A DNA stretch of 24,086 nucleotides. It comes from Bugula neritina (Eukaryota > Animalia > Bryozoa). Position numbers and translations under genes: made by a program. The notes under the pieces were generated by a model. The model was given only the letters and a program-made list of their open reading frames with translations. It was not told the origin of the DNA and did not search any database. The DNA lies in assembly GCA_964035545.1 (NCBI GenBank), contig CAXIUT010000036.1:1-24086 (forward strand), read 5' to 3'. Positions within the stretch are counted from its first letter, which is position 1, and the number at the start of each line of letters is the position of its first letter. Below, piece by piece: positions 428 through 22,765 of the stretch.

Positions 428-3400
428 ATGGGGAAAAAAATAGTTCAAGAAGAATAATAGTAAATCTAAGAAGAATAATAACTCTAAGAAGATCAACTAT
501 AAAAACTCTTCAAAAAAACAACTTCTAAAATGATATCTAGTTAGCAAGGATATCCCCAAAAAAACAAAAGTGCATGTAAAAAAAACAAAAATTCATTTAT
601 ACTTGACCAAATTAAATCGCATTAACAGAACTAAAAATTAACAAGTATTTTTTCTGATTGTATTGATATTTAAAGAAAATAAAATTTTCTATTAGATTTA
701 GATAAGAAGAACAATCAAGAATAAAGTTTGAAGTTTTCATAAAAAGAATAATTAATGTAGAAAGCTATTTATTTTTTAAATGAAAATAGTTTAAAAAATT
801 CTATCAATTGTTTAGAAGAAATTATTCTTTTTAAACTTTCCTGATACTAAATAAATGATCTAAAAAAATAAAATTGAAACGAAATGTTTTTAGAGAGAGA
901 TAATAAAAAATATATAAGCTATTGAAATAAATCCGAGTAATATAGAAGCTTATCATAAATTAGGAGATATATTTGGGGATATAAATAAACCATAATAAGC
1001 GATAAAATGTTTTCAAAAAGTAATCAAAATAAATAAAAATGACTCCAATGCTTTCTATAAGTTAGGCTGTACTTTTAAAGAAATTAATAAAGACTAATAA
1101 GCTATTTAATCTTATAAAAATGCTATTGATATTAATCCTAATGATTAAGACGCTTTGAATAACTTAGGGATTATCTTAAGTCATTTAAATAAACCTTAAT
1201 AAGCAATAAAATGTTATAAATAGGCAATCAAAATAAATCCGAAATCAACCTAAGCTTTTTTTAATCTAGCACTAGAATAAAATAAATTGTAATAAAATTA
1301 GAAATAAATTGAATGCTATAAAAAATTTATTGAATTCAATTCTAATGATTCAGAGGTTTTTTATAATTTAGGAAATATATATTATTAAAAAAACAAAATA
1401 TAATGTGCAATTGAATATTATCGAAAAGCTGTTTAAATAAATCCAAAAATGTCATAAGCTCTTTTTAATTTAGCAATAGCACTTAGTGATATAAATAAAG
1501 ATCAATAAGCTATTATTTATTATGAAAAAGCTCTTTAAATCAATCCTAATGATTGCTAGATTTATTACAATTATGGAATGGCTTTAAAATAGATAAATAA
1601 AGTTAATTAAGCTATAGAATGTTATAAAAAAGCTATAAAAATCAATCCTGATTATTTCTAGGTTTATTATAATTTAGGAGTATTACTTCAAGAAACTAAC
1701 TAAATAGAATACGCAATAAAATGTTATAGAAAAGCTATTGAACTAGATCCGAATGATTCATAATCATTTATTAAATTAGGAAATATTTATGATTAAATAA
1801 CTTAAAATAATAAGCAATCCAATCCTATGAAAAAGCTATTTAGGTAAATCCTTAGTGTATTAATGCTTATTTTAACTTAGGTATATTATTGCAGGATTAA
1901 AATCAAACTTAGAAAGCAATATAATATTTTATAAAAGTTCTTTAAATAGACCCTTATTATTAAAATGTTTTTCATACTTTGGGAGTTGCACTTCAATAAA
2001 TAGGTAAAAATTAACAAGCTATTCAATGTTATCGAAAAGCAATCGAATGTAATAATAATTTTGTAGGTGCCTATAATAATTTAGGATCAGTATTTTTTCA
2101 AATCAATAAACCTAATTAAGCCATAAAATGTTATAAAAAATCTATTTAAATAGATTCTAGTGATTCAGAAAACATATTATAATTTAGGAGTTATATATTA
2201 TGAAATAAATGATCCCAAAAAAGCAATAAAATATTTGAAAAAAGCTATTAAAATAGATTCTAATTAAATAGATGCCTATATTAACTTAGGGGCAGTATTT
2301 AACTAAATAGATAAACCTCAATAAGCAATAAAATATTTAAAAAAAGCTATTTAAATAGATTCTAATGAGTCAAATGCATATTTTAATTTAGGATCAAGTT
2401 TTAGTAAATTAGATAAGCCAAAATAATCAATAAAATATTTTAAAAGGCTATTTAGATAAATTCTGATGATTCAAGTGCATATTTTTAATTGGGAAAGAAC
2501 TATAGAAAAATAGATAAACATTAATTAGCAATAAAATGTTACAAAAAGGCCATTTAGATATAACCTAACGACTCAAATGCATATTGTAATTTAGGAATTA
2601 TTTTCAAATAGAAAGGTTAATAAAAAAAAGCTGTTTAATTTTTGAAAAAATCTATTAAAATAGATCCATAAAATTTAGATGCCCATATAAATTTAGGAAG
2701 TTTATTTGAAGATATGGATAAAATTGCTTTAGCAACAAAATGTTATCAAAAAGCTATTGAAATCGACCCTTATAATTCAGCTAACTTAAATAATTTAGGA
2801 ACACTATTTGAAGATCAAGGAAAAATAGCAGCAGCAATTAAATTCTATGAAAAAGCTGTTTAATTTGATTAAAATAATTAGATAGCAAAAAATAATTTAA
2901 AAAATATTTTAATTATGGATAGATTATTGTCATTAAAATAATAATAATAAGAATAATAATATTAAAAATAAATAATAAATAGTAATGATGATTAATAATT
3001 ATTTAAATTAGGAAATGCATTTGAAAAAAACAAACAAATAAAATATGCTATTGAATGTTATGATAAATCTCTTTAGATAAATCTATAGAATTAAAAAGTT
3101 CTTTAACAATTAATTTTTATTCTTGATTAAAGCAGATAAGAATTGATAATCAAATATTATTAAAAAGTCTTTTAGATTATGTCCAATAATTAGCGAATAT
3201 ATTTTAATTTAGGAGTTATCCTTGAAAAGATTAATAAAGAATAATAGGCAATTAAATGTTATAAAAAATCAATTTAACTCGATCCACAGAATGAAGAAGC
3301 TTACTTTTACTTAGGATCTTTATTTGAAGATAATAATTTATAATAAGCTCTTTCTTACTATAAGAAAGCTATTGAAATTAATCCAGATAATGATCAAGTT

Positions 3401-6400
3401 CTTTTTAAGATTGGCTATGTATTTGAATAATTAAACAAAAAGAATAAGCAATAAAATACTATCAAAAATCACTTTATATTAATTCTGGTAACTCTGATCC
3501 ATTTGATAATTTAGGATTGATATTTCGTTAATTAAACTAAACACAATAAAAAATTAAAGCTTATAAACAAAAGATTAAAATTAATCCTCATAATAGAGAA
3601 GCTTTGTAATTTCTAGAAATATCTTGCCTGCAGAACGATAAATATTTCTAATTAATAGAATGCTATGACTATAATAATTTTAATACTCCTGGTTTAAAAG
3701 AAGAATATTAAATATTTCAGATGTATATTTTTAATAGTCTAAGTTTGAGAGAATTTTGTTAAAAATCTAAAATATAATAGAATTAAACAAAAAAAAAAAT
3801 CGAATCTTTTATCGTAAAAATTATCAAATAAAACTGTATTATTGAAGCAATCTAATTCATTCCTAAAATAATTTCAACAGACTATAACTCAATTTAGTAC
3901 TTTATCATTTTAAAATAATCTTTGCTTTCAACCAAGTACTTATTATCAGAATAAGTTATTTTCAAATTAAAAAAATTGGCTTTGAGTTGGTATAAAATTC
4001 TCTTAACTTATCACTTCTATTCAATTATACCTTATTTTTTAATACATAAAAATTTGAATAAATTTCTACAATACTTCTTAAGAAATATTGTAAATTATTA
4101 GTTCTAAATAATAAAGAAAAAAGAGATAAGTAGATTTAAACTATAGTTAAATCTAGTTTTTTGAATCAATACTCAATAATTCATTTCTATAAAAGAGATA
4201 ATGATCTTATAAAAGCAATTCTTCAAGATATATTGGAAGAATCAAATGTAAATGTTCAAATTTTTATAAAGGATGATTTAAAAATCAATAAAAATAAATA
4301 TTAAAAAAAGATATATTTATGGTTAAAAATTTTAGATTTCAATAAAGAAAGTAAAAATAAAAAAAAAGCTATGCTCTAGTTTGTCTATACTTTTAGATAC
4401 TTATTAATATAATTTAATCAAAATAAGAAAGTAATTAATTTAATGTTCATGATTTTCAAGTAATTATAAAAAAGAGAATTTATTGATAAAATTTATATAA
4501 ATAGAATAACTTAAGATTTTACAAAAATATCAATTGAAAAATATTTTTTTATTTTGAAAAGTATTTTCAAAGGGATGATTCTCAAAGTTATAACTTTAGA
4601 AAGAAAATTATATCGATCAAATAAAAAGTTAAAATAAATAAAAAGAAAAACATATTTTAATATTTTGATTTTAAAGGGCAAGAATTATTTTTCTGTTAAT
4701 TTTCTGTTAATTAACTTGAAATAGCTGCTTTATAGATAGAATAATTATATTAAAAGAACAAAATTTATTTATAAGTTATTTCTAAAGAAATAAATAATTG
4801 CAAAAATACAAAATATAATAAAAAATTGCAAAAGATCAATATGAAACTAATCAAAAATATAATCAAAAGAAAATAATTTACCACATCTGTTAAAAATATG
4901 ATTTATCTTTTTCAAGAAGATAGAGATAAATATCAATTGAATTTTTTTCAATGTTTAATTAAATCTATCTTTCTTAAATAAAATAATCAAATAAATAATC
5001 TTAAGAAAAGGGTTATAAATAATAACAAAGATTAAATAAATACTTTCTCAGTTTAATAAAGTTACTTTTTCTTAATAATATAAAATAATCAAGCTTTTTA
5101 CCTTTTAATAAAGAAGATAAATATAAATAAAAACTAGAAATAAACTAAAGTCAATAACCTCAAACTTCAAAGTAAAACATAAAATATTAAAGTGAAAAGA
5201 TTCAATAAGAAAAATAATACAAAAGTAGATAATTTTAAAGATATTTTGAAAAATTAAAGGAAGTAGTTGACCTTTTCGATCATCCTCGTTCTTAGTATTA
5301 CCGACTTTTAATAGATAGATAACTTAGTTAGGATGAAAATTAAAGTAAAATCAATTTAATTATAGATTTTTCAAGAGAATATTCATAGAAGTTAGATAAT
5401 AGATAATCATTTTTCTAAATTTTCAAACAATAATTAATTCATATAAATAAATAAAACTTGGAGTAAAAATAATCTTTTGATAATTCTAGAATGAAAAGAT
5501 TCCAAAAGTAATAAATGTTTAATATAGTTAGATAAAATAAAATAATAATTCTTCTTATTTTAATTTGATTTATCCTTATCTGTTATATTTGATTGAAAAA
5601 GAAAGAAGTGAATCTTAAATTAAATATATAGAAAATAAAATAAAATCTATTATTTTGGATTTTAAAAATGAATTTATACCTTTTAAAATTTCTAAAAATA
5701 TTTATAATTTCTCTTAGGAAACATCAAAACTGAAGTATTAAAAATAATAATTATAAATTTTAGAATTCGATATTTGGCCTAATAAATCTATAAATCAGAT
5801 TAAGTTAAAGAACCATTCTTCTAGAATTACAAAAAAACTCAGTTAATAACAAATATAACAAAAATACAATTTTTAATATTAAACATATTTAATGAAACTA
5901 AAACCTATAATAACTATTTTAGAGAATCCTTAATCAAATAAATATTTATAGTTAATTAATAACTAAAATAAATAACATTCTATAAATGAAGATCCTCAAT
6001 AAATAGAAATATATTAGTAAAGTGAATCCTATATAAGAAGTAGTTTTGATAAAAGTGCTTATCTTTCAAAAAGTGAAATAAAAGGTTCATATTAAAAAAA
6101 TAGCTAAAGATATCAATAAGAAAAAACTATTAATAGTATTGTTAAAATTCCAAATGTAAAATAAGAATAGAAATAAATATTAAAACCATTCAATAAATAT
6201 CTTTTTAAAAACTACATTAATCTAATTCAATATCTTTCATCTCAAAAAGTTAACTTTCGATATATAGCTCCTCATTTCTATAATTAAGATATTATTGTAA
6301 AAGCCAATGGAAATATTTAATGGTTTTTGCTTTAAACAGAAAAAGGTTAATCTTCATTTCAATTTTCATCAACTCTTTTGATAAAACATAGTAAAAAACA

Positions 6401-7287: not shown

Positions 7288-8518
7288 ATGGAACCAGTCA
7301 AAGACTAGTAAATCCAAGCTCTTCTCAACCAAAGCTACCTCAAAGAATCTATCAACCTCAAGTGTCCTTAAGGAAATAAAATAGAAAGAATGTGCACTGA
7401 TCCAGCTTGTCCTAACTCTTTGATCTGCACTAACCCTACTTGCAGTGCATGTTCAGAATATTCTCAAGAAGCTGAGTCAAGTCCTTTGGTTGGTCTTACT
7501 AAAAACCTGAATCGGATGATCGATAACAACAAAGATCTAATGTATGGAGTTTTAAAAATCGATAACAACTTCGTATAAACTTTCAAAGAAAACTAGCAAA
7601 AGTTTATCAAAGGATCACCTTTCAGAAATCTTGATGTTAAAAACCAAAAACTAGTCCAAGAGATTCATAATCACATCAATGGAAAATGTCTTAATGGAAA
7701 AGAAGCAAAAGAATTGTTAAATAAAGTTTTAACTCTCAGTAAAAGTAATAAAAACTAAGAAGTAATAAGAAAGCTAGAAGATTACTAAAAACAAATGAAA
7801 AAATTCAATGAAGCCATATAATAGTTCAGGTAAAATATATTTAATAAACTACATAACGATTTTGATCCAGCTATCTTAAAGAAAGGAGATAAAAATAAAG
7901 ATATTAATAATAATTGTAATTCAGTTATCTTGAAAAAAGGAAATTAAAATGCCTCGAATGAATTTGATTCAGTTATTTTGAAAAAAGGAGATAAAGATTT
8001 TGAACAACAAAAGTTATTTTTGATGGAGGCTTTAAAAAAACCAAAAAGGTTATAACTACTTTATAGAGGATCAGAAAATGATTTTATTGGATTTACTTTC
8101 CATAAAAAATGTGATAACATCTAGCATACTCTTACTTTAGTGAGAACTGAGTTTGGTAAAACTATTGGAGGATATACTAAATACAAGTGGAACCAAGTGA
8201 GTGGTTATCTAAAAGATGTAGGGAAGGAAGTTTTTCTGCTGTCTTTGGACTTAAAGTAAAAAATGATTTGTCAAGATCAAAATTATATAATATACTGTAG
8301 CCATATCTATGGTCCAATATTTGGAGGTAATGATCTCTACATATCTGATCAATGCAATAATAATAACGATTCTAAAGCAAACTTAGGTCATTCCTATAAT
8401 TCTGAAGATAAAAAAATACATTTATGACAATAAGTAGACCTGGAAAGCATTTTCTGGAGCAACCTAAAATCAATATTTTAAAGTGGTTGAATACTAAGTA
8501 TTCAGAGTGATTTGGTGA
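7288..8518 (+). CDS. Cys-rich finger + coiled-coil + TLDc domain protein, paralog 1 (one frameshift)
   Basis: MEPVKDEEIQ...CPEGNKIERMCTDPACPNSLICTNPTCSAC..., then TLDc motifs LLYRGSE, FHKKCDN, TLVRTEFGKTIGGY, GPIFGG.DL.ISD.CN and FKVVEYEVFRVIW-TGA. The A-run at 8410-8416 has 7 A against 6 in paralogs 2 and 4, which breaks the frame. Confidence 0.88.
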
Positions 8519-10249
8519 TCGTCATTCATTTGTTATTTGTAATCAATAAATAATATATATCAAAGTAAATAAGTATAAATATGATCTATCATTACTGTTT
8601 TAAAAAATTGTTTGAATAATATAACAATAAATCAATATAATGTACTGGTAGTTTCAATGATTAAGATCGAATATCAACAAATAGGTTGTGCAGATCTAAC
8701 AGTGAAATATTATTGAAGATTTTGTTGATTTTTAGATATATAAAGAAGGATGTATAAGATCAATAATTTATTAGAACAAAATAAACCAGTTATTGCCAAT
8801 ATAGCTAGATAAATAATTAACAAATCAAATTAAAATAGCAAATCAACTATTAGTCAATAACTAAATAAACAATAATATAATTCAACAGATTAAAATAAGT
8901 AATATTATCTAGAGAATAATCAGCTTTTGATAGCAGTAAAGATAATAAGAAAAAGAAAGAAGGAGAACGAATAGAGAAGCAAACTGGATATCGAAAGTAA
9001 AAATTATCAACTAATGAAGAAGTCTATCTCATGGAAAGAGTGCAAAGAGGACAAATAAAAAAGTTAAAAGAGTTTAAGACATAAGATTTAAAGAGAAATA
9101 AATAATAGTCAACAACAAACAAAAAAGAAGAGAAGAAAACAGACTTTTCAAAAAGACAAGGGGAAAGAGTTAGATTCAAGTTTATCAAGCAGAAAGGGAA
9201 GCAAGTCTTATCATAATAGAAGATAACTTCAATCAAGATAATGAATAGTATCAAAGGTCAAGTAATCAGTAACAAATACGTCTAAATCTAAAGATGAAAA
9301 AGGGAGAGGTATATTCAAAAGAATTTATTAAAGAGAAGTATTATGAAATCAATAATGTCCATTGAAAATAAATACTTTTAGGAGAAGGGTTAATCATTGA
9401 ATAAAAGTGGAATAGTCGTAAGATAATGAGATAAAAGATCACTATTTAGATTTTGTTGATAAAAAGTGAAAATGGATAAGGTATTCGATAATAGTAGAAG
9501 AGTAAGAATGACATAATTCAGATTATTATCCTCAAAATCAAGATAAATGATCAATAATTTGTTCTCTATTTCAATGATTTATCTATTTGTCCAATGTTAT
9601 CATCGAGAAAGGGTTTTGGTATAATATTATTCATAGCTAGTAATTTAATATGATAGATCATAATTAAAAATCATGATAAACATACTCGAATACTTCATTC
9701 CTCCTTACTTCTCATTGCTAGTAGATCGATCAAACCATTTTAGGTATTGAGATTGGTTTTAACAGACAAATAAGCAGGTCCGAGTTCAAAAGTAAACAAG
9801 CAAATGTTAAAAATATTATTTCAATAGAGCTGCATGTCACCTGAAGGACCATGCTTTATCAAGAATGTTAAAGAAATTTATGACTAGCAGAAGAGAAACC
9901 TGTAAGATAAGATTGTACAATTCTAAAAATAATTCATGATTCTTTGTGATTAGGAACGTCTCTTTGATTCACATCGCGACGAATAATTTTATTACAGAAG
10001 TGAAGATCTTATAGAAATAGTATCTGTAATCAACTCTGTCTAGTTATCAATAAAAAATAGAAATCTCAATCTTCACATCCCCTCAAAGAATAAAATAACA
10101 ACTAAACTGGCTACAAAATTATCAATCCCATCAAAATAATAATAAATAGTAAATAAATAACAAACATGTTCGAAGTAAAATAATAATAACCCTCATTTCT
10201 CACTCTTGAACAAACAAATAATAAACGAACAAATCAATTAGAGGATTAT

Positions 10250-11320
10250 TCATTTGATCGAGTTATTATTGGAGATATCCGTGTCAAGTAGTTAATTAGC
10301 TGTATCCATAGTCTCGAGATTGCAATTGTTTGGAGCAATGAACTTCATTAAAGATAAATCAGCATTAGCTATTCTACTGCTGGTTATTAAGACAACAAAT
10401 CCAACTTACCTTTAGAACTGCTTATGCCTGAAGACAGTATCTACTTTCAAGTTAATTTTTTCGATGTAGTTGATATCATCCACTTGATTGTTATGTTGGC
10501 TTAGCATTCTAACGACTTACTCGAACTATTCTTCTTGTTAAGCATCTAGACAAGAAAAGTGATTATCAAATATGTTCAATATTCGATGTCTGTGGTGATT
10601 CTATCTTAATGTGTATGTGATTTCATTCTTTAGTGCTACTGTTACTCTTTAAACTTTTGCTTTTCCTTTGTCAACTACTCAATATATATTGTTTATCATT
10701 GCGAATAAATGAAATTTATCGAATAACAACTTATGTCTTAATCCTGATAAATTTGAATTGATTGGCAACCCGGATAAATGACTGCATCTCGTATTTTACA
10801 AGACCTTTAGTTATCTTAGGATTTATTCTAAATAATAACTATGATAAAAACTAGGAAGGTTGCTAATGCTATTCTGTTTTGAATCTGAATGGAAAAAAGT
10901 ATTGTCCTGGTGGTGTAAATGATCCATCAAAGCTAAGAGAAGAAGATGTTAGAATCTGGCAATGATTCTACCTACTGAATATCTTTTTTATCTATATGAT
11001 ATCACTTCCTCTTTCGATATAGTTAAATTTCATAGACTAGTCATTGACCTATTCATCTTATGAGTCAGAACTTTACATGTGGACTCAGTAGGCGTTAAGC
11101 CATATAATGTTAGTTTGTACTCTATTTCTTTAATTTTACATAAGAACTCTTTTTTTGATTTATCAAGATGACTACCTTTGAACTTGACTGTGATGTCGTT
11201 AGCGTTGACTGGTTATACTACATAGAGATAGACGTAGCCTTCGAGCCTTTACCCTGCAAAATCAAATGGTTTGTTGAATTAAATAAATGCTGATGAGATC
11301 TAGATATGTTGTGATGAATA
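10250..11320 (-). pseudogene. Arrestin-domain (alpha-arrestin-like) pseudogene, copy A
   Basis: Paralogous to 19170-20330. It keeps the LEGYVYLY and PPGQYFFPFRFK motifs, lacks the segment corresponding to ~19602-19710 (CCCCDQG), and has multiple frameshifts. Confidence 0.75.
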
Positions 11321-11555
11321 TTATTTTGATTATATTTCTAACAAAGTCATAAGTATCTCTTGTATCTTGCTACAACTTAATAAATGATAGTACTAGATAG
11401 CATAGTTATCATTTTTAGGATAGAAATAAAATATGACTTACCTAGATTTATTGTTATCTGATAAATAACTATATTATTATTTGATAAAGAACTATATTAT
11501 CATCTGAAAAACAACTTTATTACTGAAGTAAGTCAAGAGTAATATCAACATCTCT

Positions 11556-11636
11556 CCCAACCCCAACCCCAACCCCAACCCCAACCCCAACCCCAACCCC
11601 AACCCCAACCCCAACCCCAACCCCAACCCCAACCCC
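11556..11636 (+). repeat. Internal telomere tract CCCAA(CCCCAA)12CCCC, 81 nt
   Basis: Perfect C4A2 repeats in left-telomere orientation. Confidence 0.99.
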
Positions 11637-12852
11637 TAAGTTAGTCATTGATCATAATTGTATATGATAACCTATAATTTATAAATCATGATAAATATCC
11701 AAAAATAGTACATTCTTTCTACTTACATCCCTTAATACCCAGTTAGTCAAATCACTTGAAGTTGTAAGATAGAGTTAGAACTAACAAATAAGCAATATCT
11801 GAGTCAAAAATAAGTAGGTGAGTAAAAACTTAATCAACATCTATTTACACATAGGTCACTGACATCAATGAAAATGAACCTTTTAACAGGTTGTAGAAGA
11901 AAGTATTGAGGACTATTGATCAAATGCAACTGAATTGCAATGGATTGATAACCAATTTACTTTCTGATATTCGAGAAAATTGTCACATAGAACACATATA
12001 GAAATACTAGCAACTTAGCAACCAGGTTTATTATTTAGAAATAGTTACAAAAAGATGAAATAAAAATAAAGTAATCAAAAACAACTTGACACAAACAAGT
12101 TAACAATGATTAACTATAGATGAAAGGAGTAAGATATATTCTAAGGTTGAAGAAGTAAATATATTAAGGATAGTCAGATAGTTATCCTTGACTTAATCTC
12201 TGATGTAATAAAACTATCTAAAATTATTGCATAAAGAACAAATCAGTTTTTGAAGTTGGAGACCTATTCTTCAAACTGCAACAAATAAGATAAAAAGATA
12301 GTTATTGATAAAAAGGATGTTAATAAACAGACAAATAAACAGCTAGTCAACAGATAATATATAATACCGAATAGATGTCACAAATGGAACCTATGGATGA
12401 CAACTATAATAAAATATATTTGATCGTAAGTGTAAAGAACCAAATAGTGATTGTTGTTGACTATTTCGGGTCAAATGTTGAAATAAGGGAAGGATCAAAG
12501 TTAATAATCTCAGAGTACTTTTATATAAAGAAAAGACTTAGTTGAGTCTATTTAATATTCTTATTGGATATATTAGTAGAGTAGATAAATATTGAAGACA
12601 AGTCCAGTTCATTGATATTAAATAACTTTGAAGCACAATGGATTAGTTAGAAATAGATACAACTGAAAATCATAGCTTTGTTCTAAAATACAATCATTAT
12701 TTAATACCAATAAGATAACAATCGGTATAACTTTTCAATATATTTTTGAATGAAAGAACTTTCTTCAACTTTATTTTCTATATAAAAATAAATTCATCCT
12801 TTTTAATATGATTTTATTAATATTTTTAATTTGCAAGTATAAATCATTAAAA

Positions 12853-14109
12853 ATGAAAGAAGAAGCAGCTAATGATTTCTAGACCATTTTCAACAACCTT
12901 AGAGTCAAGTAGCCCTAAAACTACCTCTGTCCAAAAGGAAATAAAATCGAAAAGTTATGCATCAATCCAGTATGTGTCAAATCAATTGGATGCAATAAAT
13001 CATCATGTTAAAGTTGTGGAATCAAAAATCACTAGCTATGTTACAGTGCTTCACTTGAATCTATCACTAACTTCATAAACAAGCGAGTAGACAACTACAA
13101 AAGCTTTACACTAAACACCTTTGAGATCGAGGACACCTTTATTAATAAAATTAACTAGAGTCGAAAAGAACTAACCCAAAAATATCAACTAAACGATTTT
13201 AGTCTTGAGGAACAAAATATAATTGAAGAAATATATAAAAATAAAAACAGTTAGTTTTTGGATGGGTAAAAAGCTAAAAAGTTTACTTAAAATTTGAAAT
13301 AATGCAACAATAAGATAAATAATGCTAGTGGATAAGTGCTAAAGAGATATAAAATCGAAATGGATCAACTGGTTTCAAAAGTTATTGAAGTCAAATAAAA
13401 ATACTATCAAGAATTCATTGAATAGATTAGTAAATAAAAGTAAGTAAAAAAAGAGGAATAACCAGCTAGTTAAAATAGTTCAATACTTTTAATACTTTTC
13501 TTCATTTTCTTTCTTTTAACCTTCTCCAATCTTATTATAGCAGGATATCAAATGCCTAATTTAAATTCAAAAATAGCTGTTCAACTCGAATAGAGTCAAA
13601 TTAACTTTCTAATGGAAGCTTTGTATCAACCAAAAAAGCTAGAATTGCTATATCGTGCATCAGAAAATAGTTTTAGTGCAAAAGCTTTTCATAAAAAATG
13701 TGATAACATCTAGCATACTTTTACTTTAGTGAGAACTGAGTTTGGTAAAACTATTGGAGGGTACAATAAATACAAGTGGAACCAAGTGAATAATGGTTTT
13801 GTAAGTGATGCAGGAAAGGAAGCTTTTCTGCTGTCGTTGGACTTAAAGTAAAAAATGATTTGTCAAGATCAAAATTATATAATAGGCTGTTACAATAACT
13901 ATGGTCCAGTATTTGGAATTTCTGATCTCTCCATATCTGACTAATGCAATAATAATAACAATTCCTATGCAAACTTAGGTAGTTCCTATAATTCTGAAGA
14001 TAAAAAATACATTTATGGCAATAAGTAGACCTGGAAAGCATTTTCTGGAGCAACCGAAAATAAATATTTTAAAGTGGTTGAATACTAGGTATTCAGAGTG
14101 ATTTGGTGA
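12853..14109 (+). CDS. Cys-rich finger + coiled-coil + TLDc domain protein, paralog 2 (418 aa, intact)
   Basis: Uninterrupted 1257-nt frame from ATG to TGA with TAR=E: MKEEAANDFETIFNNLRVKEPENYLCPKGNKIEKLCINPVCVKSIGCNKSSCESCGIKNHELC...LELLYRASEN...FHKKCDN...VVEYEVFRVIW. It contains a hydrophobic segment or in-frame intron at 13469-13540. Confidence 0.92.
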
Positions 14110-14793
14110 TTGTCATTCATTTATTATTTGTAAATTATCAATAAACATTATCAAAGTCAATAAGTTTGAATATAATTTATCAAGTAATAGCTATCATAAA
14201 AAGCTATTCAAGATATTATATCGTAAATCAATTAAGTGATATATTGATAGTTGTAGTTATGAAGATGAATATTAACAAATAAGCTGTACGTTTCTAATCG
14301 TAAAATATTGATGAAGATTAGGTTGATTTAAGATAGTGCTAGAGGGATGAGATCAATAATATTGGAATAAAATAAATCAGTTACTACCTATATTGCTAAA
14401 TACACCAGTTAGCATAATATCAAATAAAAGTAATAAAGTAACTAGTAGCAAGCCATAAGAAAATAAAATAGATTGACATAAGTTAAACTACAAGGAGAAA
14501 GAATCTAATTAATAGAGGAGTAAAGAAAGCAAGAAGAATAGGAAAATAGGAGGACCAATATCAGACTAAATATAAGTAAAAATGTAAAAATTTAAGTTAA
14601 AAGTATCAACCAAGAGATCTGTTTCAATGAAAGATGATTAAGAGGACAAACAAACATGTTAAAAAGTTGAAAAAGGAATGTAAAGATAGAAAAAGATAGT
14701 TAATAACAAAAAAAAGGAAGAAGAGAGGAAGATCTTTCAAAAAACCAAAAGGAAAGGAGTCGAATTCAAGTTTATCATTAGAAAGAAAAACAA
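13635..14793 (+). repeat. Third, partial copy of the duplicated TLDc + 3' flank unit
   Basis: The TLDc half and ~680 nt downstream align with 8050-9200 and 17810-18935. Confidence 0.88.
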
Positions 14794-14845
14794 CTGTTGC
14801 AACACTTCCTTCATTAAAAAGACAATCACAACTGCTTTGTCTTTA

Positions 14846-16028
14846 CTTCAAACTCACTCGAAATACTTAGTACTTGACTAATTCTATTAGTTAATCCTGA
14901 AAAGAGGCTGAATAGCTCTGCTGGGTTGTTAACATATTTATTGTAGCCGTCCTAGTTGTATGCGTAAGGAAGTTAGTCCAGAAATTATTGTTGTTGTTGC
15001 ACTGATCTCTAATACCAATATCACTATTTTCAAATAGAGGATCATAACTACTGAAACAGTCAATTAATTTTTTATCCATTTTAGTTTTGACATTTTATTT
15101 TTTATTTTAAATTCAATGACAAAAACAAGGCTTCCTTCTTGGCATCCTTTACCAACTATTATTAATTAGAAAGTCGATTCCATTTGTATTTGAAATAGCA
15201 ATTGATTGTTTTTCCGAACTCTGTCTTCACTAAAGTCAATGTTATAATTTTTAATTAAAGGCTTTTTGCTCTAAAGCTATAATTCTGATCCTCTGAAGAA
15301 TAAATCTAAATATTTATGCTGATTGAGTCCATTTATTAAAAAATCAATTTGCTATAGTTGTAGATGTAAAGATGTAACACTCATTTAAAGCTAAAAGTTA
15401 GCATTTATCTATCAGCATCTAAGTATAGAATACTTGCTTTGATTCCATATTACTTCTAACAAAAGTTATTGGTAAATTTTATTTCAGTAATAATAATCCA
15501 TCCATCAACTTATCTATTTCAACTTGATATTTCTTAATAGTTTCTCTGCTTTTATATTGATACTTGGATCAAAATCTTTCAGTTTGTATAAAATTTCTTT
15601 GCTTATTATTAACCACTAAGAAAAGAACAGTTGTTATTTTTGTATATTTATTTAGGATTTTCTTTTCCTCTATTTTTAATCAACAAACCTATATTTTTAA
15701 GAAATTTTCTTTCTGCTAGAGGTAAATTTATCAACTAATGCATCTTCAATCTCCAAACTATTAACAACAAAATCAGAATAAAAACCATTTTTTTACAGAT
15801 AAGACAAGTAATAGCTTGAAGAGAAGCAAAGGGAGAATATTAATGAACATTTAAGCCACAACTTTAACACTCCATGTCACTGCATTCAATCGACTTACTA
15901 CAGTATTTGTCGATACATGGTTTAGATATCTTATTACCTTGTTCACAGACACAGTTAGGTAATTCTTTCAGAGTTGAACTATTGAATATTGTCTAAAAGT
16001 TACTGTTGAGATGATATTCTTCTTTCAC
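14846..16028 (-). pseudogene. Inverted TLDc-family pseudogene, paralog 3
   Basis: The minus strand begins GTG AAA GAA GAA (paralog 2 has ATG AAA GAA GAA). Recognisable segments are CEQGNKISKPCIDKYCSKSIECSDMECESC, FRGSE, TLTLVKTEFGKTI..YFKYKWN, DQCNNNNN and YEVFRV. There are several frameshifts and the FHKKCDN block is lost. Confidence 0.88.
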
Positions 16029-17099
16029 TACTTTATTTATATTTTATGATATTAGATATCGAACTATTTATACTAACATTCCAAAATAGAATAAGTCTTA
16101 AATAATCTTAATATAATTTTACTTGATAGAATTTCAATAACTAGTAGAGAATGTTTTCTCATTAATACATATGTTTCTCTTCTACTTGAAGTCAAACAAT
16201 CTCACCACTCAAAAAATAATAATTAAAAACAAAAGATCGATGAAACATCTTAAAAGTGATGGGGAAGGTAGTTGAGTGAAACACTTAGATAAAAATCTTC
16301 ATCTATAGAATAAAATATAGCGATTGTTTTAGCTCAAAAGGATTCTTAGCTTTGTGTCTTAGTCAATACATATAAAAAAATGCAGTCAACAAGTAAAATA
16401 TCCGATCAATTATCAACTAGTTCATATCTAACTACAAAAGATAAATAGACATTAATCGTATGTTAATGAAATGATTATGTTTTAAATACTAAAGACTTAT
16501 CACAATTGATATAACTCATAAATACTTATGACTTATGATTTACAAAATATAATTATCAAAGTAGAAGAGAAGGATATCAAGACAAAGATTCTTAAATAAT
16601 AGCAGTCTATCAATGCAAAAGATATTAAACTACATTTTAAATACAAAAAGAACTAAAATAAAATAAATGAATAATAATCCTGAATGTAGTAAATCATTCA
16701 TAGATTGTATTAGTCGTCTAATAGAAGTACATCCATAGATTTTTTGCTACTTTTCATAATTTTCTTCAGTTTAAATATTTATGATAAATTTTCATGGATA
16801 CTAGATAGAGTTAAAAGAGCAACTATATTCAATTAAAAACTATTCCAAAATAAAGAACTAATAAAGATAAAGTCTCTATCATTGACATTTGGAAAATCTA
16901 ACTAAGAGGTTTTGTATTTTGAAGTTGAAAAAATGAGGTTGATTTTGAAGGACATCACTTGCTCTTTTGAATCTATCGAAAGAAGTAGTGGAATTATCTA
17001 AGCATAATTTTATCATGTAAATAAAATAAATTTATTTTTTTAATATGATAGTAATAATACTTTTAATTTGTAAGTATAAATTATAAAATTATCATTAAA

Positions 17100-18281
17100 A
17101 TGCAAGAAGAAGCACCAAGAAACGACTTTTAAACTATGGTTAATAACCTAAGAGTTAAATAACCATAGAACTACCTTTGCTAGAAAGGAAGCAAGATTGA
17201 AAAACTCTGCATCAATCCTTAATGCAAGAGATCGATTGGATGTTCTAACATTGATTGCAAAAGTTGTGGTTATTAAAATCATCAATAATGCAATCATGTT
17301 CCTCTTAAAGTTGTTACTGGTCTACTTAACAAAAGAATCGATCACTACAGTAACTTCACTACGAATACTTTTGAGATCTAAGATGTCTTCATAAACAAAA
17401 TCAAATAGAGTAGACATGATCTCACTCAAAAATACAAACTGATGGATCTGACTGTCAAATAGCAATAGATAGTCAAAAATATATACAAAGATAATAACTG
17501 TTCTTTCCTTGATGGTAAAAATGCAAAAGAGTTTTATAAAAAGTTGAAAACTATTGGTCAAAACATTACAGAATCAGCTGGATAACTGCTAAATCAGTAT
17601 CGAATTTAGATGGATAAACTAGTCGAACAGCTACTTCTTCTAAAATAAAAGTTCTATCATTAATTTATTCTATAAATTAATAAGTAATATGCAAAGTACA
17701 TGTAGATAAGAAAGTCAATTAAATAAATATCAAAAAGTAAAATATGTTAGTCCCTAAAGTAGTAACAACTCTCATTTTTGAATTATGTTCTCAACTATCC
17801 AAAACAGTTATAACTACTCTACAGAGGATCAGAAAATGGTTTTAGTGTATCTGCTTTTCATTAAAAATGTGATAACATCTAGCATACTTTTACTTTAGTG
17901 AGAACTGAGTTTAATAAAACTATTGGAGGCTATACTAAATACAAGTGGAACCAAGTGAATGATAATTATGTAAAAGATGCAGGAAAGGAAGCTTTTCTGC
18001 TGTCTTTGGACTTAAAGTAAAAAATGATTTGTAAAGATAAAAATAAAATAATCTACTGTAACAATAACTATGGTCCAACATTTGGAGGTGGACATGATCT
18101 CAAAATATCTGACCAATGCAATATTTACAATTCCTGGGCAAACTTAGGTTATTCCTATAATTCTGAATATAAAAAATACATTTGGGACAATAAGTATACC
18201 TGGAAAGCATTTTCTGGAGCAACCGTAAATTGTAATTTTAAAGTGGTGGAATACTAAGTATTCAGAGTGATTTGGAAGTGA
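17100..18281 (+). CDS. Cys-rich finger + coiled-coil + TLDc domain protein, paralog 4 (393 aa, intact)
   Basis: Uninterrupted 1182-nt frame: MQEEAPRNDFETMVNNLRVKEPENYLCEKGSKIEKLCINPECKRSIGCSNIDCKSCGYENHQEC...LELLYRGSENGF...GPTFGGGHDLKISDQCN...VVEYEVFRVIWK-TGA. Confidence 0.92.
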
Positions 18282-19169
18282 TCGTCATTCATTTGTTATT
18301 TCTAAATAATCAATAAATAAGTATCAAAGTTAATAAGTTTATATATGATCGATCATAACTATCTTTTAATATAGTTTTAAATCCTATCAATTATCGTATT
18401 ATCATGATGTACTACTGATAGTTGTAGTTATTAAGATCGAATATCAACAAATAGGTGATGCATTTCTAACAGTAAAATATTGATGAAAATTCAGTTGGTT
18501 TTAGATAGTATTAGAAGGCTCAGATCAATAATATTAGAATAAAATAAATCAGCTACTACATATATTGTTAAATAAATCAGTTCGCATATCAAATAAAGAT
18601 AATAAATCAACTAGTAACAAGCCATTAAATCAAAATTAAAAGAGAAGAATATAAAATAGATTGATATAAGTTATATTACAAAGAGAAAAAATCTAATTAA
18701 TATAGGAGTAAAGAAAGTAAGAAGAAAAGGAAAGTAGAGGAAGACCAAAGTCAGATCAAATAGAAGTACAAATGTTAGCATTTTAAGTTAAAGTATCAAC
18801 CAAGAGATCTATTTCAGGGAAGGGTGACAAAGAGGACAAATAAATATGTTAAAAGAGATGAAAAAGGAATGTAAAGATAGATAAAAGATAGTTAATAGCA
18901 AAAAAGGAAGAAGAGAGGAAAACCTTCTAAAAAACAACTAAGTATTATCATAGTAGCAGATAACTTCAATCAAGATAAACACTTAATATCGAAAGTCAAC
19001 AAGTTATCATCAAATACATCTAATCAAAAGAGGACAAACCATCAGAATGATAGCAAATAAATAAGTAAACAAAATAACAAACCTATTCAAAGGCCAGAAT
19101 AACCCTTATTCCCTCATTCTTGAACAAACATTAATCATAAACTAACAGATCAGTTCTAAGGACTATTAT

Positions 19170-20330
19170 TCATTTGATTGATGTTATTGTTGGAAACATT
19201 CAAGTTGATTTGTAAACTAACCATTAGGATTTCAATTGTGTAGAACCTGGAATAAACTATTAACTGGAATCGATTTATCAGTATTGGCTGTTTTACCACT
19301 TGATAACTAAGAGAACAAGTACAACTTGCATATAAAACAGCTTACACCTGAAGACAGCATCTACTTTTAGATCGATTCCTTTAGATGTAGTTGACATGCA
19401 TTGGATTGTTATGTTGGTGCAATGTTCTAACTCCTTGCTGGCACTATCATTCTTGCCCAGCATCTAAACCAGAAAAGTGATTGTCGAATATATTTAATGT
19501 CCGATGTCTGTGATGATTCTATCTTGATATAAAAGTTATTTCGTTCTTTAGGGCTACTGTTACTCTTTAGACCTTTGTTTTCCTTATTTTTTGTTAACTA
19601 CAAAGTACATTTTGGCATCTTATCCTGGTGCATCTCCATTTTCTAGAAAAAACATTGAACTCTGGTTACGCCTTGATCACAGCAGCAACAACTCTTAACA
19701 TTTGCTTATAACTATTGTTTATCATTGCGAAGAGGTGCAATTTATCGAAATACAACTTATCTTAGTCATGATAGCTCTGAATCGATTAGCAACCTGGATA
19801 AATGTCTGCATCTAGTATTTGATACGACCTTTATTTATCATGGGATATATCCTAAAAATAATTATGAAGCATACTAGGAAGGTTGCTAGTGTTGTCTGTT
19901 TTGAATCTGAATGGAAAAAAGTACTGTCCTGGTGGTTTAAATGATTCATCAAAGCTAAGAGAAGAAGATGTTAGAACCTGGCAATGATTCTACCTCCTAA
20001 ATATCTTTCTATCTATATGATATCACTACCTCTCTTGATAAAGTTAAATTTTATAGACTAGTCATTGACTTATCCATCTCATGAGTCAGAACTTTACATG
20101 TGGCCTCAGTAGGCGTTATGCCAGATCATGTTGGCTTGTACTCTGTTTCTTTAACTTTTCATTAGAACTTTTTATTCTATCCATTTATTATGACTACTAT
20201 TAAACTTGATTGTGATGTCATTGGCGTTGACTGGTTATACTAGATAGAGATAGACGTGGCCTTCGAGCATTTATCCTACAAAGTCAAATGATTTGTTGAA
20301 TTGGGTGAATGGAGATCTATATATGTTGTG
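19170..20330 (-). pseudogene. Arrestin-domain (alpha-arrestin-like) pseudogene, copy B
   Basis: Minus-strand fragments in different frames read FVGEMLEGHVYLYLVEPVNANDITIKF, FKPPGQYFFPFRFKT, KGRIKYEMQTFI, VKSCCCCDQGVTRVQCFFEK and PGEDAKMYFVVN. These match arrestin N/C domain patterns. There are many frameshifts and the start is uncertain. Confidence 0.8.
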
Positions 20331-21596
20331 ACTAATATTATTTTGATTTTATTTCTAACAAAGTCATAAATATCTCTTCTATCTTGCTACAACTTAATAA
20401 AAGATAGTACTAGATAGCATAATTATTATTTTGGGAGAGAGATAAAATATGACTTAGATAGATATATTATTATCTGATAAATAGCTATATTATTATTTGA
20501 TAAAAAACTATATTATCATCTGATAAACAACTGAAGTAAGTCAAGAGTAATATCAACATCTCTGATTATCTCCTCATCCATTTGAAAACCAGAAGTCTGT
20601 TATTAATTTATAAAAAATATGGCGCCATAAATTATACTTTATCATAAGTTAGTCATTGATCATAATTGTATATGATAACCGTTAATTTATAAATCATAAT
20701 AAATATCCAAAGATAGTACATCCTTTCTACTTACATCCCTTAATATCCAGTCAGTCAAATCACTTTAAGTTGTAAGATATAGTTAGAACTAACAAATAAA
20801 CAATGTCCGAGTGAAAAATAAGTAGATTAATAAAAACTTAATCAACATCTATTTACACATAGGTCACTAACATCAATACAAACGAACCTTTTGACAAGTT
20901 GTAGAAGAAAGTATTGAAGACTATTGATCAGATGCAACTGAATTACAATGTTTTGCAACCAATTTACTTTCTGATATTCAAGAAAATGGTCACATAGAAG
21001 AAATAAAATAAACACTAGCAACCAAGCAAACAGGTTTATTATTCAAATATAGTTAAGAAAAGATGAAATAAAAATAAAGTAGTAAAAAACAACTTGACAC
21101 AAATAAGTTAACAATGATTAACTATAGATAAAAGGAGTAAGATATATTCTAAGGTTGAAGAAGTAAAATATTAAGGATAGTCAGATAGTTATCCTTGACT
21201 TAATCTCTGATGTATTAAAACTATCTAAAATTACTTCATAAATAACAAATCAATTTTTGAAGTTGGAGACCTATTCTTCCAACTGCAACAAATAAAACAA
21301 TAAGATAGTTATGGATATAAAGGATGTTAATAACAGACAACTAAACAGCTAGTCAACAAATTATATATAAAACGAATAGATATCACAAATAGAACCCATG
21401 GATGACTACTACCAATAAAATATAGTAAATCACAAGTGTAAAAAACCAAATAGTGATTGTTGAATATTCGGGTCAAAGGTTGAAATAAGGGAAAGATAAA
21501 AGTTAGTTATCTCAGAGTACATTTATATAAAGAAAAAGACTAGTAGAGTCTATTTGATATCTTATTGGATATGATAGTAAAGTAGATAAAAATATA

Positions 21597-21617
21597 GAAG
21601 AAGAAGAAGAAGAAGAA
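21597..21617 (+). repeat. (GAA)7 microsatellite
   Basis: Seen directly. The paralogous site (~12594) has a single GAA. Confidence 0.9.
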
Positions 21618-22765
21618 GATAAGTTCAGTTCATCTATCTATGTTAAATCATTATGAAATACTATGTATCAGTTCAGATTACAGAGCCATAGCTTTGTTCT
21701 AAAACACAAAATTATTTACTAACTTAATTATACTCAAATTGCTTCTAAAAAGATAATAAATCATTAACAAATCTTAGGTCAACTATTTTATTCAACGAAA
21801 TTGGAAAAGATCAGTGAAATACATCAGTATGAAAACTAGAAATGGAAGAGGTTATCTAACTACCTATAGAAATTAGTATTACTTGTTTTAATAGAGTGTG
21901 TCTTATCAAGAAATAGAGAAGAGAGATTGGTTGTTTTAAGTTATGTTTGTTTATGTGGAAGTCATGAGTGAACTTTATAGAAGACTAGACTTAGTATTCA
22001 CGACATTTGATAAATAGATATTATATATATGGATAAAATAACAATCAAATAAGGTAAAAAAATCGAATCATTTATTTTTTTATCTTCAAATTTTTGTTTC
22101 TTGCTTAACTATGTCATTTATTATATTATCACTAATCCATCTTAAATTAAAAATTCTTATTTATTACTTTTCTTTGAGGTTGATATTATATATTTTTAAA
22201 GTAAAAAGTTTTTCTTATTTTGACTAGTATTCACTTCAATGTTATGAATAAAAAATAAGCATATTTTCATCGTTAAATACTTAATTAATTCATAGCTGAA
22301 CATTAAAAAATAAAAAAGAATTTGATTATTAAATTTTATATGAGTAAAAACAAAAAATACTAACTAAATTGATAATAATTCGTTAGGATTGTTATCCGGC
22401 CGTTGTAGCCGTAATAGACAACTAGACACCGGGAAAGACTGGACGTTAAAAATGTAATTATAATTATTATCAATACTATCACTACTATTACTACTTTTCT
22501 TGTGGGTTTCTGGGTCCGTTCCTGAAAAACGGACATCCAACAGACATATGAAGAGAAGAAAAAAGGAAGGAGAAAGGAGAAAAACACTGGAGAAGAAGCT
22601 AGGAGAGATGTTGAGGTAGGAGAGGAAGAGATAGAAGGATAAAGGAGGAGTTGAGGGGTCAGAGGATGAAGGATGGATGCAAGGAAAAACAAATAAAAAA
22701 ACAAATTAACTTAATTAAATAAAGATAATCCCATAGTCCAAAACAAAAATGGACACATGATTCAT

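Follow-up and report, generated by a model that had tools for sequence, protein, structure and literature searches.

Diversifying selection and cassette exchange as the likely source of clustered hypervariable codons in a TLDc gene family

An important feature of the gene family described here is the concentration of its variability in a small part of one domain: about 20 codons of the C-terminal TLDc domain have probably been driven apart by diversifying selection, in combination with the exchange of a TLDc cassette among paralogs. We consider this, taken as a whole, to be the best explanation of the data. These codons would have been pushed apart in seven patches by positive selection acting on a near-identical framework, and the cassette itself would have been transferred between, or homogenised across, genes with far older N-terminal halves. 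No dedicated mutator would be needed for this, nor is one indicated. The window, by which we mean the whole stretch of DNA that was analysed (24,086 nucleotides of contig CAXIUT010000036.1 in the Bugula neritina assembly GCA_964035545.1), is read here as a somatic chromosome, capped by telomeres, from a ciliate in which UAA and UAG code for glutamate; it was co-assembled with a larger standard-code genome.

The 75.8-kb scaffold carries eight near-intact paralogs, three of which lie inside the window (P1, P2 and P4), together with two frame-broken copies, one in the window (P3) and a second at scaffold positions 41858-43074. The paralogs share a layout in which a Cys-rich module is followed by a helical region and then by the TLDc domain. 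In seven of the eight copies an open frame of 400-460 codons runs to a common TGA end, and the ORFs start 20-30 residues upstream of the single Cys-rich module. The frame of P1 is broken by one extra A within the A-run at 8410-8416, which may reflect either a pseudogene or a homopolymer error. The genes, cassettes and flanks of the window are as follows.

7288-8518, forward strand: P1, with Cys-rich module, helical region and TLDc domain, its cassette starting at about 8047 (from translation and alignment)
8519-9187, forward strand: 3' flank of P1, duplicated along with the cassette (self-BLAST)
12853-14109, forward strand: P2, an intact ORF with TGA end, homologous to all other copies from 13606
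13636-14109, forward strand: TLDc cassette of P2, codon alignment columns 287-445 plus the stop codon
14110-14777, forward strand: 3' flank of P2, duplicated along with the cassette
14627-16133, reverse strand: P3, a decayed P2/P4-type copy, broken up over several reading frames
17100-18281, forward strand: P4, intact, with its cassette at 17805-18281, homologous to all other copies from 17799
18282-22003, forward strand: 3' flank of P4, within 17799-22003, which matches scaffold positions 33597-37801 at 88.6% identity

Self-BLAST aligns 8017-9187 with 13606-14777, and 8041-9154 with 17799-18934, while the stretch 15031-15344 of P3 matches 18084-17774 at 65.7% on the DNA level. The family would have grown by segmental duplication of units made up of a gene and 1-4 kb of its 3' flank. 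It would be a young family, its products cytosolic proteins with a possibly zinc-binding Cys-rich module at the N-terminus; the N-terminal half of P2 belongs to a different subfamily. Among public sequencing runs, the locus was found in none of the RNA runs, and its only matches were Logan contigs from two runs of one study.

All three near-intact copies of the window match PF07534 above its cut-off of 24.5 bits in a six-frame read-through profile search, with 61.1 bits for P1 (7993-8406), 61.7 for P2 (13564-13998) and 65.9 for P4 (17733-18134). When stop-free pieces were compared with Pfam, the TLDc matches remained below threshold at 16-18 bits because the pieces are short. Structural work was carried out on P0125, the closest full-domain relative (51% identical to P2), standing in for the window proteins. 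Its model (pLDDT 95) matches the TLDc structures of NCOA7, OXR2 and mEAK-7 (7obp, 4acj and 7u8o; TM 0.65-0.79, E 5e-9 to 7e-8), and on the strength of this modelled relative the family is predicted to have the beta-sandwich TLDc fold. A search of solved structures with a 78-aa piece from the window returned chance matches only. In the architecture that we propose, the helical region is probably a coiled coil and the C-terminal TLDc domain would form the beta-sandwich.

A first-pass annotation of this DNA had described, in P1, P2 and P4, a constant framework interrupted by variable codons, and had supported this with three shared strings and twelve codon triplets. The strings occur once each per window paralog (8107/13696/17865, 8247/13839/18008 and 8438/14029/18198) and recur in further copies on the scaffold, and all twelve triplets are found in the codon alignment (columns 298, 371, 373, 374, 375, 379, 384, 387, 399, 404, 416 and 431). 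The pattern is in fact sharper with eight paralogs than with three. Across the eight copies, 100 of the 157 cassette codons encode one amino acid, 40 encode two or three and 17 encode four to six; about 20 codons, with three to six amino acids each, gather in seven patches, given here by their positions in P2 together with NEB values for P(omega>1).

13678-13683, forward strand: patch V1, columns 301-302; NEB 0.93 and 0.999
13789-13800, forward strand: patch V2, columns 338-342, with four to six amino acids per column; NEB 0.99 at column 340
13876-13893, forward strand: patch V3, columns 368-373; NEB 0.95 at column 373
13918-13932, forward strand: patch V4, columns 383-387; NEB 0.98, 0.94 and 0.99
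13960-13983, forward strand: patch V5, columns 397-404; NEB 0.997, 0.996 and 0.997
14014-14019, forward strand: patch V6, columns 415-416; NEB 0.999 and 0.99
14056-14067, forward strand: patch V7, columns 429-432; NEB 0.96, 0.997 and 0.999

The V2 loop is also variable in length, and loop-length indels occur at columns 339, 341, 381 and 393. Residues at the hypervariable sites are rich in Tyr, Asn, Gly, Ser, Asp and His, with Tyr alone accounting for 21% of them versus 5.6% elsewhere. In the wider subfamily the same columns are both more variable and more polar (p ~0.05 each). Judged by secondary structure alone, an enrichment of hypervariable sites in loops was not significant (11 loop, 6 strand and 2 helix versus a background of 73, 62 and 20). 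In a contig from run X2, differences at 14064-14067 and 18228-18236 fall in V7; they may belong to an allele or to another paralog. Paralogs cross-map in these contigs.

The most direct evidence for diversifying selection comes from codon site models of the TLDc domain. Across eight copies from one scaffold, M2a was favoured over M1a (LRT = 50.3, p = 1e-11), with the caveat that recombination can inflate such LRTs and that the paralogs here have clearly recombined. The result was robust to the use of table 6 (52.5) and of the N-terminal topology (54.2), and in a control on six of the same genes the N-terminal half gave an LRT of 0.0 versus 38.7 for the TLDc domain. Under M2a, 13% of sites fall into a class with omega ~5.9 and 56% have omega 0.02, the M0 estimate for the whole domain being 0.77. 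The per-site check proposed in the first-pass annotation, now made with more paralogs, thus bears out a positively selected class on a strongly conserved TLDc framework. Simple counts point the same way: mean pN reaches 0.49 at the hypervariable codons versus a pS of 0.126 in the other 139 codons, and any given pair differs in amino acid at 9 to 20 of the 20 hypervariable codons. P4 and P6, the youngest pair, have a whole-domain dN (0.142) above the divergence of their 3' flank (0.069). Amino-acid change that so far outpaces silent change is the signature that natural selection for diversity leaves on a putative binding surface, as opposed to that of a retroelement-type mutator.

The evidence for exchange lies in the different ages of the parts of each gene. 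Cassette dS is 0.07-0.25 across all 28 pairs (about 0.15), versus N-terminal values that run from 0.2 up to saturation and a 3' flank divergence of 0.07-0.72 with a mean of 0.40. On TLDc data the AU test rejected the N-terminal topology (p = 0.016), as it did in the reverse comparison (p ~1e-38). Taken together, the low and uniform cassette dS, the diverged N-terminus and flank, and the conflicting trees indicate that genes exchanged the cassette or that it became homogenised between them. In P2 and P4, homology to the other copies sets in at 13606 and 17799, respectively, which is the boundary of the domain. GC-biased conversion was also considered and rejected, GC3 being equal in the two halves (0.30 versus 0.29).

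The first-pass annotation had also entertained a mutator resembling diversity-generating retroelements (DGRs), which would rewrite the variable codons from an AAY-rich template by adenine-directed mutagenesis, and had proposed that the idea be dropped if variation proved equally frequent at non-A columns. Several observations are in keeping with it, namely the star-like cassette tree, the occurrence of AAY in one or more copies at 10 of the 20 hypervariable columns, and some enrichment of NNY at hypervariable codons (70% versus 53% elsewhere). This last figure is what is left of the earlier remark that third-position C/T is kept: it stands as a weak tendency but fails as a general rule, since NNY is found in all copies at only 4 of the 20 hypervariable columns, and position 3, where variation proceeds at the rate that selection alone predicts, takes 25% of the minimum changes in hypervariable codons. 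Variation is no commoner at adenines than at other bases, so that the DGR reading is refuted on its own terms. The variable fraction is 22% for A, 40% for G, 38% for C and 28% for T at position 1, and 28%, 38% and 27% for A, G and C at position 2; A-consensus columns are variable in 22-29% of cases versus 27-40% for G and C. Furthermore, 130 A columns and eight codon columns with AAY throughout all copies remain invariant between the hypervariable codons, silent third-position A's show no excess (13 of 44 variable versus 33 of 105 other silent sites), and 38 variable columns are without any A. The template search suggested at the same time, run over the whole assembly with the best candidates scored, gave ten matches to cassette-like DNA, all of them in full or decayed gene copies, and no orphan template repeat among the matches scored. 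A PF00078 search for reverse transcriptase, in which the best 150 of 2192 candidates were scored, gave only retrotransposon-type matches on Mb-scale standard-code contigs and is uninformative for ciliate contigs; on the 75.8-kb scaffold, no RT-like ORF was noticed when the ORFs were inspected. We regard a templated mutator as extremely improbable, which removes the false lead of a eukaryotic DGR at this locus.

Three further explanations deserve consideration. The differences at the hypervariable codons could be of the same age as the N-terminal halves and have been kept by selection as repeated short gene conversions removed everything else, without any acceleration. It is true that the cassette is a homogenised stretch with divergence on either side, in the 5' half and in the 3' flank, and that JC-corrected hypervariable divergence (0.80) is not above the saturated N-terminal dS. 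This account nevertheless seems unlikely to us: the invariant stretches between hypervariable codons shrink to 1-4 codons (397/399/404 and 383/384/387), which would demand conversion tracts of implausible shortness and precision; the pairs P1/P5 and P7/P8, with an N-terminal dS of ~0.21, still reach a hypervariable pN of 0.39 and 0.50; and the N-terminal tree signal is absent from the hypervariable codons. Relaxed constraint, with redundant or dying copies gathering neutral changes, is more improbable again. The rejection of the nearly neutral M1a, the conservation of more than half of the codons, the open frames in seven of eight copies and the fact that changes gather, whichever the copy, in one small set of codons all speak against it, even if the P1 frameshift, the broken frames of P3 and of the copy at 41858-43074, and the intermediate whole-domain omega would suit it. 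Finally, the locus is repetitive, short-read contigs break inside the cassettes and the assembly has odd internal telomere tracts, all of which could suggest mis-assembled or collapsed paralogs, or sequencing errors at the variable codons. We find such an artefact scarcely credible, given that independent short-read contigs from run X1 show 0 differences over pieces of 1.0-1.9 kb (covering part of P2 and all of P3), that the differences are codon-structured multi-base substitutions unlike homopolymer errors, and that the eight copies each have distinct flanks.

Diversifying selection with cassette exchange also invites a view on function. Work on TLDc proteins has treated them as conserved proteins that regulate the V-ATPase and resistance to oxidative stress, and to our knowledge the TLDc domain is a conserved V-ATPase regulator in every studied case. 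An immune-like receptor function for the present family is plausible: the patches would form a binding face with which each paralog recognises a different partner, and oligomerisation, on the model of TRIM-type receptors, would be the role of the helical region. In mEAK-7, residues G276/H277 and P316/Q317 contact the V-ATPase (PMC9263379). They align with columns 298/299 and 338/340, in an alignment of 15-20% identity over the first half of the domain, and by this remote alignment three patches would lie on or beside the V-ATPase-touching loops. If the variable face is the V-ATPase-binding face, its targets may be diversified host partners or pathogen factors at the phagosome or lysosome, which would offer an entry into innate-immunity-like systems of ciliates. 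A frozen TLDc framework with a few loop codons at omega ~6 suggests that the domain can act as an adaptable recognition scaffold. More speculatively, and with considerable doubt on our part, ciliates might possess a TRIM-like intracellular recognition family with TLDc as its variable, CDR-like module, its repertoire renewed as paralogs on small telomere-capped somatic chromosomes exchange cassettes. This would be driven by an arms race whose opponents would be intracellular bacteria, viruses or effectors directed at the V-ATPase or phagosome.

Several known systems help to place the family. In DGRs, too, a small number of hypervariable codons, NNY in part, are set in a conserved scaffold, whereas the cassette here shows no adenine specificity and no template repeat among the matches scored. 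The domain itself is held in common with OXR1, NCOA7, mEAK-7/TLDC1, TBC1D24 and yeast Oxr1p and Rtc5p, and the stator-contacting loops of mEAK-7 align, remotely, with patches V1-V2. Those proteins are conserved V-ATPase regulators in one or few copies; the present family, in contrast, is a tandem or segmental array that places TLDc behind a Cys-rich module and a helical region and bears positively selected hypervariable patches. Lineage-specific multiplication of TLDc genes has been reported in oligohymenophorean ciliates, Paramecium bursaria (PMC7702705) and Tetrahymena utriculariae (PMC11834939). The passages of both papers on these expansions give copy number, read as protection against oxidative stress, and contain nothing on the site-specific hypervariability and cassette exchange seen here. 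Ciliate TLDc expansions have so far been read only as copy number for reactive-oxygen tolerance. In our literature search, no paper turned up that dealt with this family or with TLDc arrays that are hypervariable or positively selected; a TLDC2 match was an unrelated branch test in Symbiodinium.

The closest parallel in design is with TRIM-family receptors that carry a variable C-terminal beta-sandwich, such as the SPRY domain of TRIM5alpha and the B30.2 domain of fish finTRIMs. The resemblance is one of analogy and not of membership, as far as the comparison of layouts goes. The family here lacks a RING, there being no second Cys/His cluster in the ORF translations, and its variable domain is TLDc instead of SPRY. 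The B-box profile PF00643 matched neither the N-terminal pieces nor the full-length relative P0135, and a six-frame B-box search, in which the best 150 of 312 candidates were scored, listed no match on the scaffold. An AF2 model of a 94-aa Cys-rich piece was unreliable (pLDDT 45), with a long helix predicted at low confidence from residue 58. What the two groups would have in common is a layout in which a zinc-finger-like module comes first, followed by a coiled coil and then by a beta-sandwich at the C-terminus, together with a clustered arrangement of paralogs and positive selection limited to a few loops of the C-terminal domain.

A genome-wide DNA search with the TLDc-encoding 3' half of these paralogs, which we call the cassette, located eight copies with 85-88% identity, every one of them on scaffold C45, and two more matches with 67% identity, one on C45 and one on C180. 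Each of the eight close copies is an ORF of 400-460 codons, and all copies match PF07534 above its cut-off.

Copies of the gene family on scaffold C45
7288-8518, plus strand: P1, ORF with cassette DNA match
12853-14109, plus strand: P2, ORF with cassette DNA match
17100-18281, plus strand: P4, ORF with cassette DNA match
Farther along scaffold C45: P5 to P9, ORFs with cassette DNA match
14627-16133, minus strand: P3, split over several frames
C45 41858-43074: decayed copy, split over several frames

In P1 the A-run at 8410-8416 is one base too long, which breaks the frame 36 codons short of the common stop. P9 lacks the shared stop, its final codons being TAT GAG where P1 and P2 have TGG and TGA, and reads on for 37 Lys/Glu-rich codons (C45 75514-75633), ending some 80 bp short of the right telomere. 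Immediately 5' of the cassette boundary, P2 alone carries a hydrophobic, T-rich insertion of about 25 codons ('...ILLILFFIFFLLTF...', about 13540-13630); this may be a small intron left unspliced, an intron cluster or the remnant of a recombination junction.

With a GC content of 16-33%, the 24,086-bp window is AT-rich. It begins with (CCCCAA)n, finishes with (TTGGGG)n and contains long ORFs only if TAA and TAG are sense codons and TGA is the stop; it forms the first contig of the 75,803-bp scaffold C45 and is followed directly by a 200-N gap (24087-24286). Within the 216-Mb assembly, the Mb-scale contigs C1-C9 use the standard code and carry, among the matches listed, hundreds of LINE-type reverse transcriptases (RTs) and, on C6 and C8, large tandem B-box arrays, while many small contigs have in-frame TAA/TAG as sense codons and small contigs are telomere-capped. 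This mixture of codes indicates that the assembly is mixed and that the window belongs to a ciliate co-assembled with another organism. Code 30 (UAR = Glu) fits the window best: the relatives P0125, P0002 and P0031 have Glu opposite window TAA (motifs '..LD.KEK..' and '..VEYEV..'), and GAA is swapped with TAA or TAG among copies at the conserved columns 289 and 296. Beside the left telomere, a long plus-strand array of diverged repeats of about 102 bp (34 codons; 732-4161), with TPR-like units 'AYxxLGxxY...', is probably one or two TPR-repeat genes. A (CCCCAA)13.5 tract lies internally at 11556-11636, with others of its kind at C45 30364-30417 and 60118-60171. In the paralogous unit, the place of the 11556-11636 tract is taken (at 20564-20644) by exactly 81 bp of unique sequence, and the flanks of the two ('...AACATCTCT' on one side, 'TAAGTTAGTC...' on the other) are identical. 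The tract at 11556-11636 looks like telomere repeat written over sequence; the simplest reading is that 11637 once served as an alternative chromosome end and left this trace.

The first-pass annotation had described a constant framework interrupted by hypervariable codons, and this description holds across all eight copies: among 157 analysable codons, 100 encode a single amino acid, 40 two or three, and 17 four to six. The three conserved strings it quoted each occur once per plus-strand paralog of the window (n=3) as well as in other C45 copies, and its variable codon triplets are all present in the codon alignment. Taking the most variable codons together with sites of posterior > 0.9 gave a hypervariable set of 20 codons, at which any two copies differ in 9-20 of 20 amino acids (median 15). 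These codons fall in seven patches, V1 to V7, at columns 301-302, 338-342, 368-373, 383-387, 397-404, 415-416 and 429-432. Assembled contigs of two sequencing runs from one study contain the locus. Those of run X1 are identical to the window over pieces of 1.0-1.9 kb (0 differences), which argues against an assembly artefact. Contigs of the second sample, run X2, differ by 3-4 bases at 14064-14067 (P2) and 18228-18236 (P4), both in patch V7, with codon combinations that match none of the eight copies; these may be either strain alleles or further paralogs.

Selection on these codons is supported. Pairwise Nei-Gojobori estimates for the TLDc half gave dS of 0.07-0.25 (mean 0.15) and dN of 0.08-0.16 (mean 0.12), with omega reaching 1.8 in the youngest pairs, against 0.1-0.5 for the N-terminal half. 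In a custom codon-model likelihood (F3x4 frequencies, 63 sense codons, 8-taxon IQ-TREE tree), omega for the cassette was 0.77 under M0, and M2a (lnL -1610.20) was preferred to M1a (lnL -1635.37) with LRT = 50.3 (p = 1e-11), a statistic that recombination, present here, can inflate. Under M2a, omega was 0.02 for 56% of sites, 1 for 31% and 5.9 for 13%. The outcome was unchanged under code 6 instead of code 30 (LRT 52.5), and imposing the conflicting N-terminal topology gave LRT 54.2. As a control on both method and biology, six of the genes yielded LRT 0.0 for the N-terminal half and 38.7 for TLDc. Mean pN at the 20 hypervariable codons was 0.49, compared with a silent divergence of 0.126 in the other 139 codons.

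The cassette also has a history of its own. N-terminal halves form three well-supported groups (P2+P4, P1+P5 and P6-P9) with saturated dS between groups, the cassette tree is star-like (bootstraps 26-56), and AU tests rejected the topology of each half with the data of the other (p = 0.016 and p ~1e-38). Starting at the domain boundary (13606 and 17799), P2 and P4 are homologous to all the other copies, and this similarity extends 1-4 kb into the 3' flank, as in 17799-22003 against 33597-37801 (88.6%). Over its first 600 nt this flank has diverged by 0.07-0.72 (mean 0.40). Flank divergence surpasses cassette dS for most pairs but, for P4/P6, the youngest of them, it is below cassette dN (0.069 vs 0.142). 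Taken together, the tree conflict, the onset of homology at the domain boundary and the diverged flanks point to a cassette that was exchanged or homogenised among genes as an island and then driven apart anew at few codons. GC3 gave no sign of biased conversion.

The proposed alternative to selection, a templated mutator resembling diversity-generating retroelements (DGRs), was refuted. DGRs restrict change to template adenines. Here, variation was no more frequent at A-consensus columns than at those of G, C or T; A is invariant in 130 columns and absent from 38 variable ones. AAY is kept in all copies at eight codon columns interleaved with the hypervariable codons (297, 310, 335, 393, 394, 401, 407 and 417), and silent third-position A beside hypervariable codons is unchanged (e.g., GCA at 400, ATA at 388). 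The reported retention of third-position C/T survives as a mild NNY excess (70% vs 53% elsewhere), but only 4 of the 20 hypervariable columns are NNY in all copies, and the excess arises because the favoured amino acids are Tyr, Asn, Ser, His, Asp, Cys and Gly. Minimum changes at the 17 most variable codons numbered 32, 26 and 19 at positions 1, 2 and 3; the 25% at position 3 is the same proportion as an AAT-type codon has there among its non-synonymous one-step neighbours. Among the matches listed, the genome-wide DNA search found no orphan template copy of the cassette. The RT profile search (best 150 of 2192 candidates) gave LINE-type matches on Mb-scale standard-code contigs and speaks for those contigs rather than for the ciliate's. 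Of the two suggested sources of diversity, selection stands and the mutator falls.

A 78-aa stop-free piece of P4, searched against 1.84 billion representative proteins, recovered 394 relatives (E <= 0.001). None exceeded about 60% identity, and many were short fragments of the sort that gene calling under the wrong code should yield from a ciliate. P0125, the best relative to span the full domain (187 aa, 51% identity with P2), has a model of pLDDT 95 that matches the TLDc structures of NCOA7, OXR2, Skywalker, mEAK-7 and Oxr1p. Placed on the secondary structure of P0125, the hypervariable sites are only weakly loop-enriched (loop 11, strand 6, helix 2). Their Tyr content (21% vs 5.6% elsewhere), the greater variability and polarity of the same columns in the wider subfamily (p ~0.05 each) and loop-length indels in V2, V4 and V5 indirectly suggest a surface location. 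In mEAK-7, G276/H277 contact subunit B1, P316/Q317 subunit A and Y341 subunit E1 (PMC9263379). Profile alignment places these residues at columns 298/299, at 338/340 and near 366, so that V1-V3 may lie on or beside the partner-binding face of a known TLDc protein; given the remote alignment, this is a lead rather than a result.

A receptor function for the family is plausible but inferred. All copies share the motif C-x8-C-x4-C-x5-C-x4-C-x2-C followed by a predicted helical region; Pfam recognised no B-box in this Cys-rich part or in the full-length relative P0135, and the AF2 model of a 94-aa N-terminal piece is unreliable (pLDDT 45), so the likeness to TRIM proteins is one of layout only. 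No account of TLDc arrays that are hypervariable or positively selected turned up in our literature search. TLDc expansions reported in Paramecium bursaria (PMC7702705) and Tetrahymena utriculariae (PMC11834939) are interpreted in those papers as protection against oxidative stress. Overall, multigene families that combine diversifying selection with concerted evolution are a known kind, and what sets this one apart is that its variable module is a TLDc domain.
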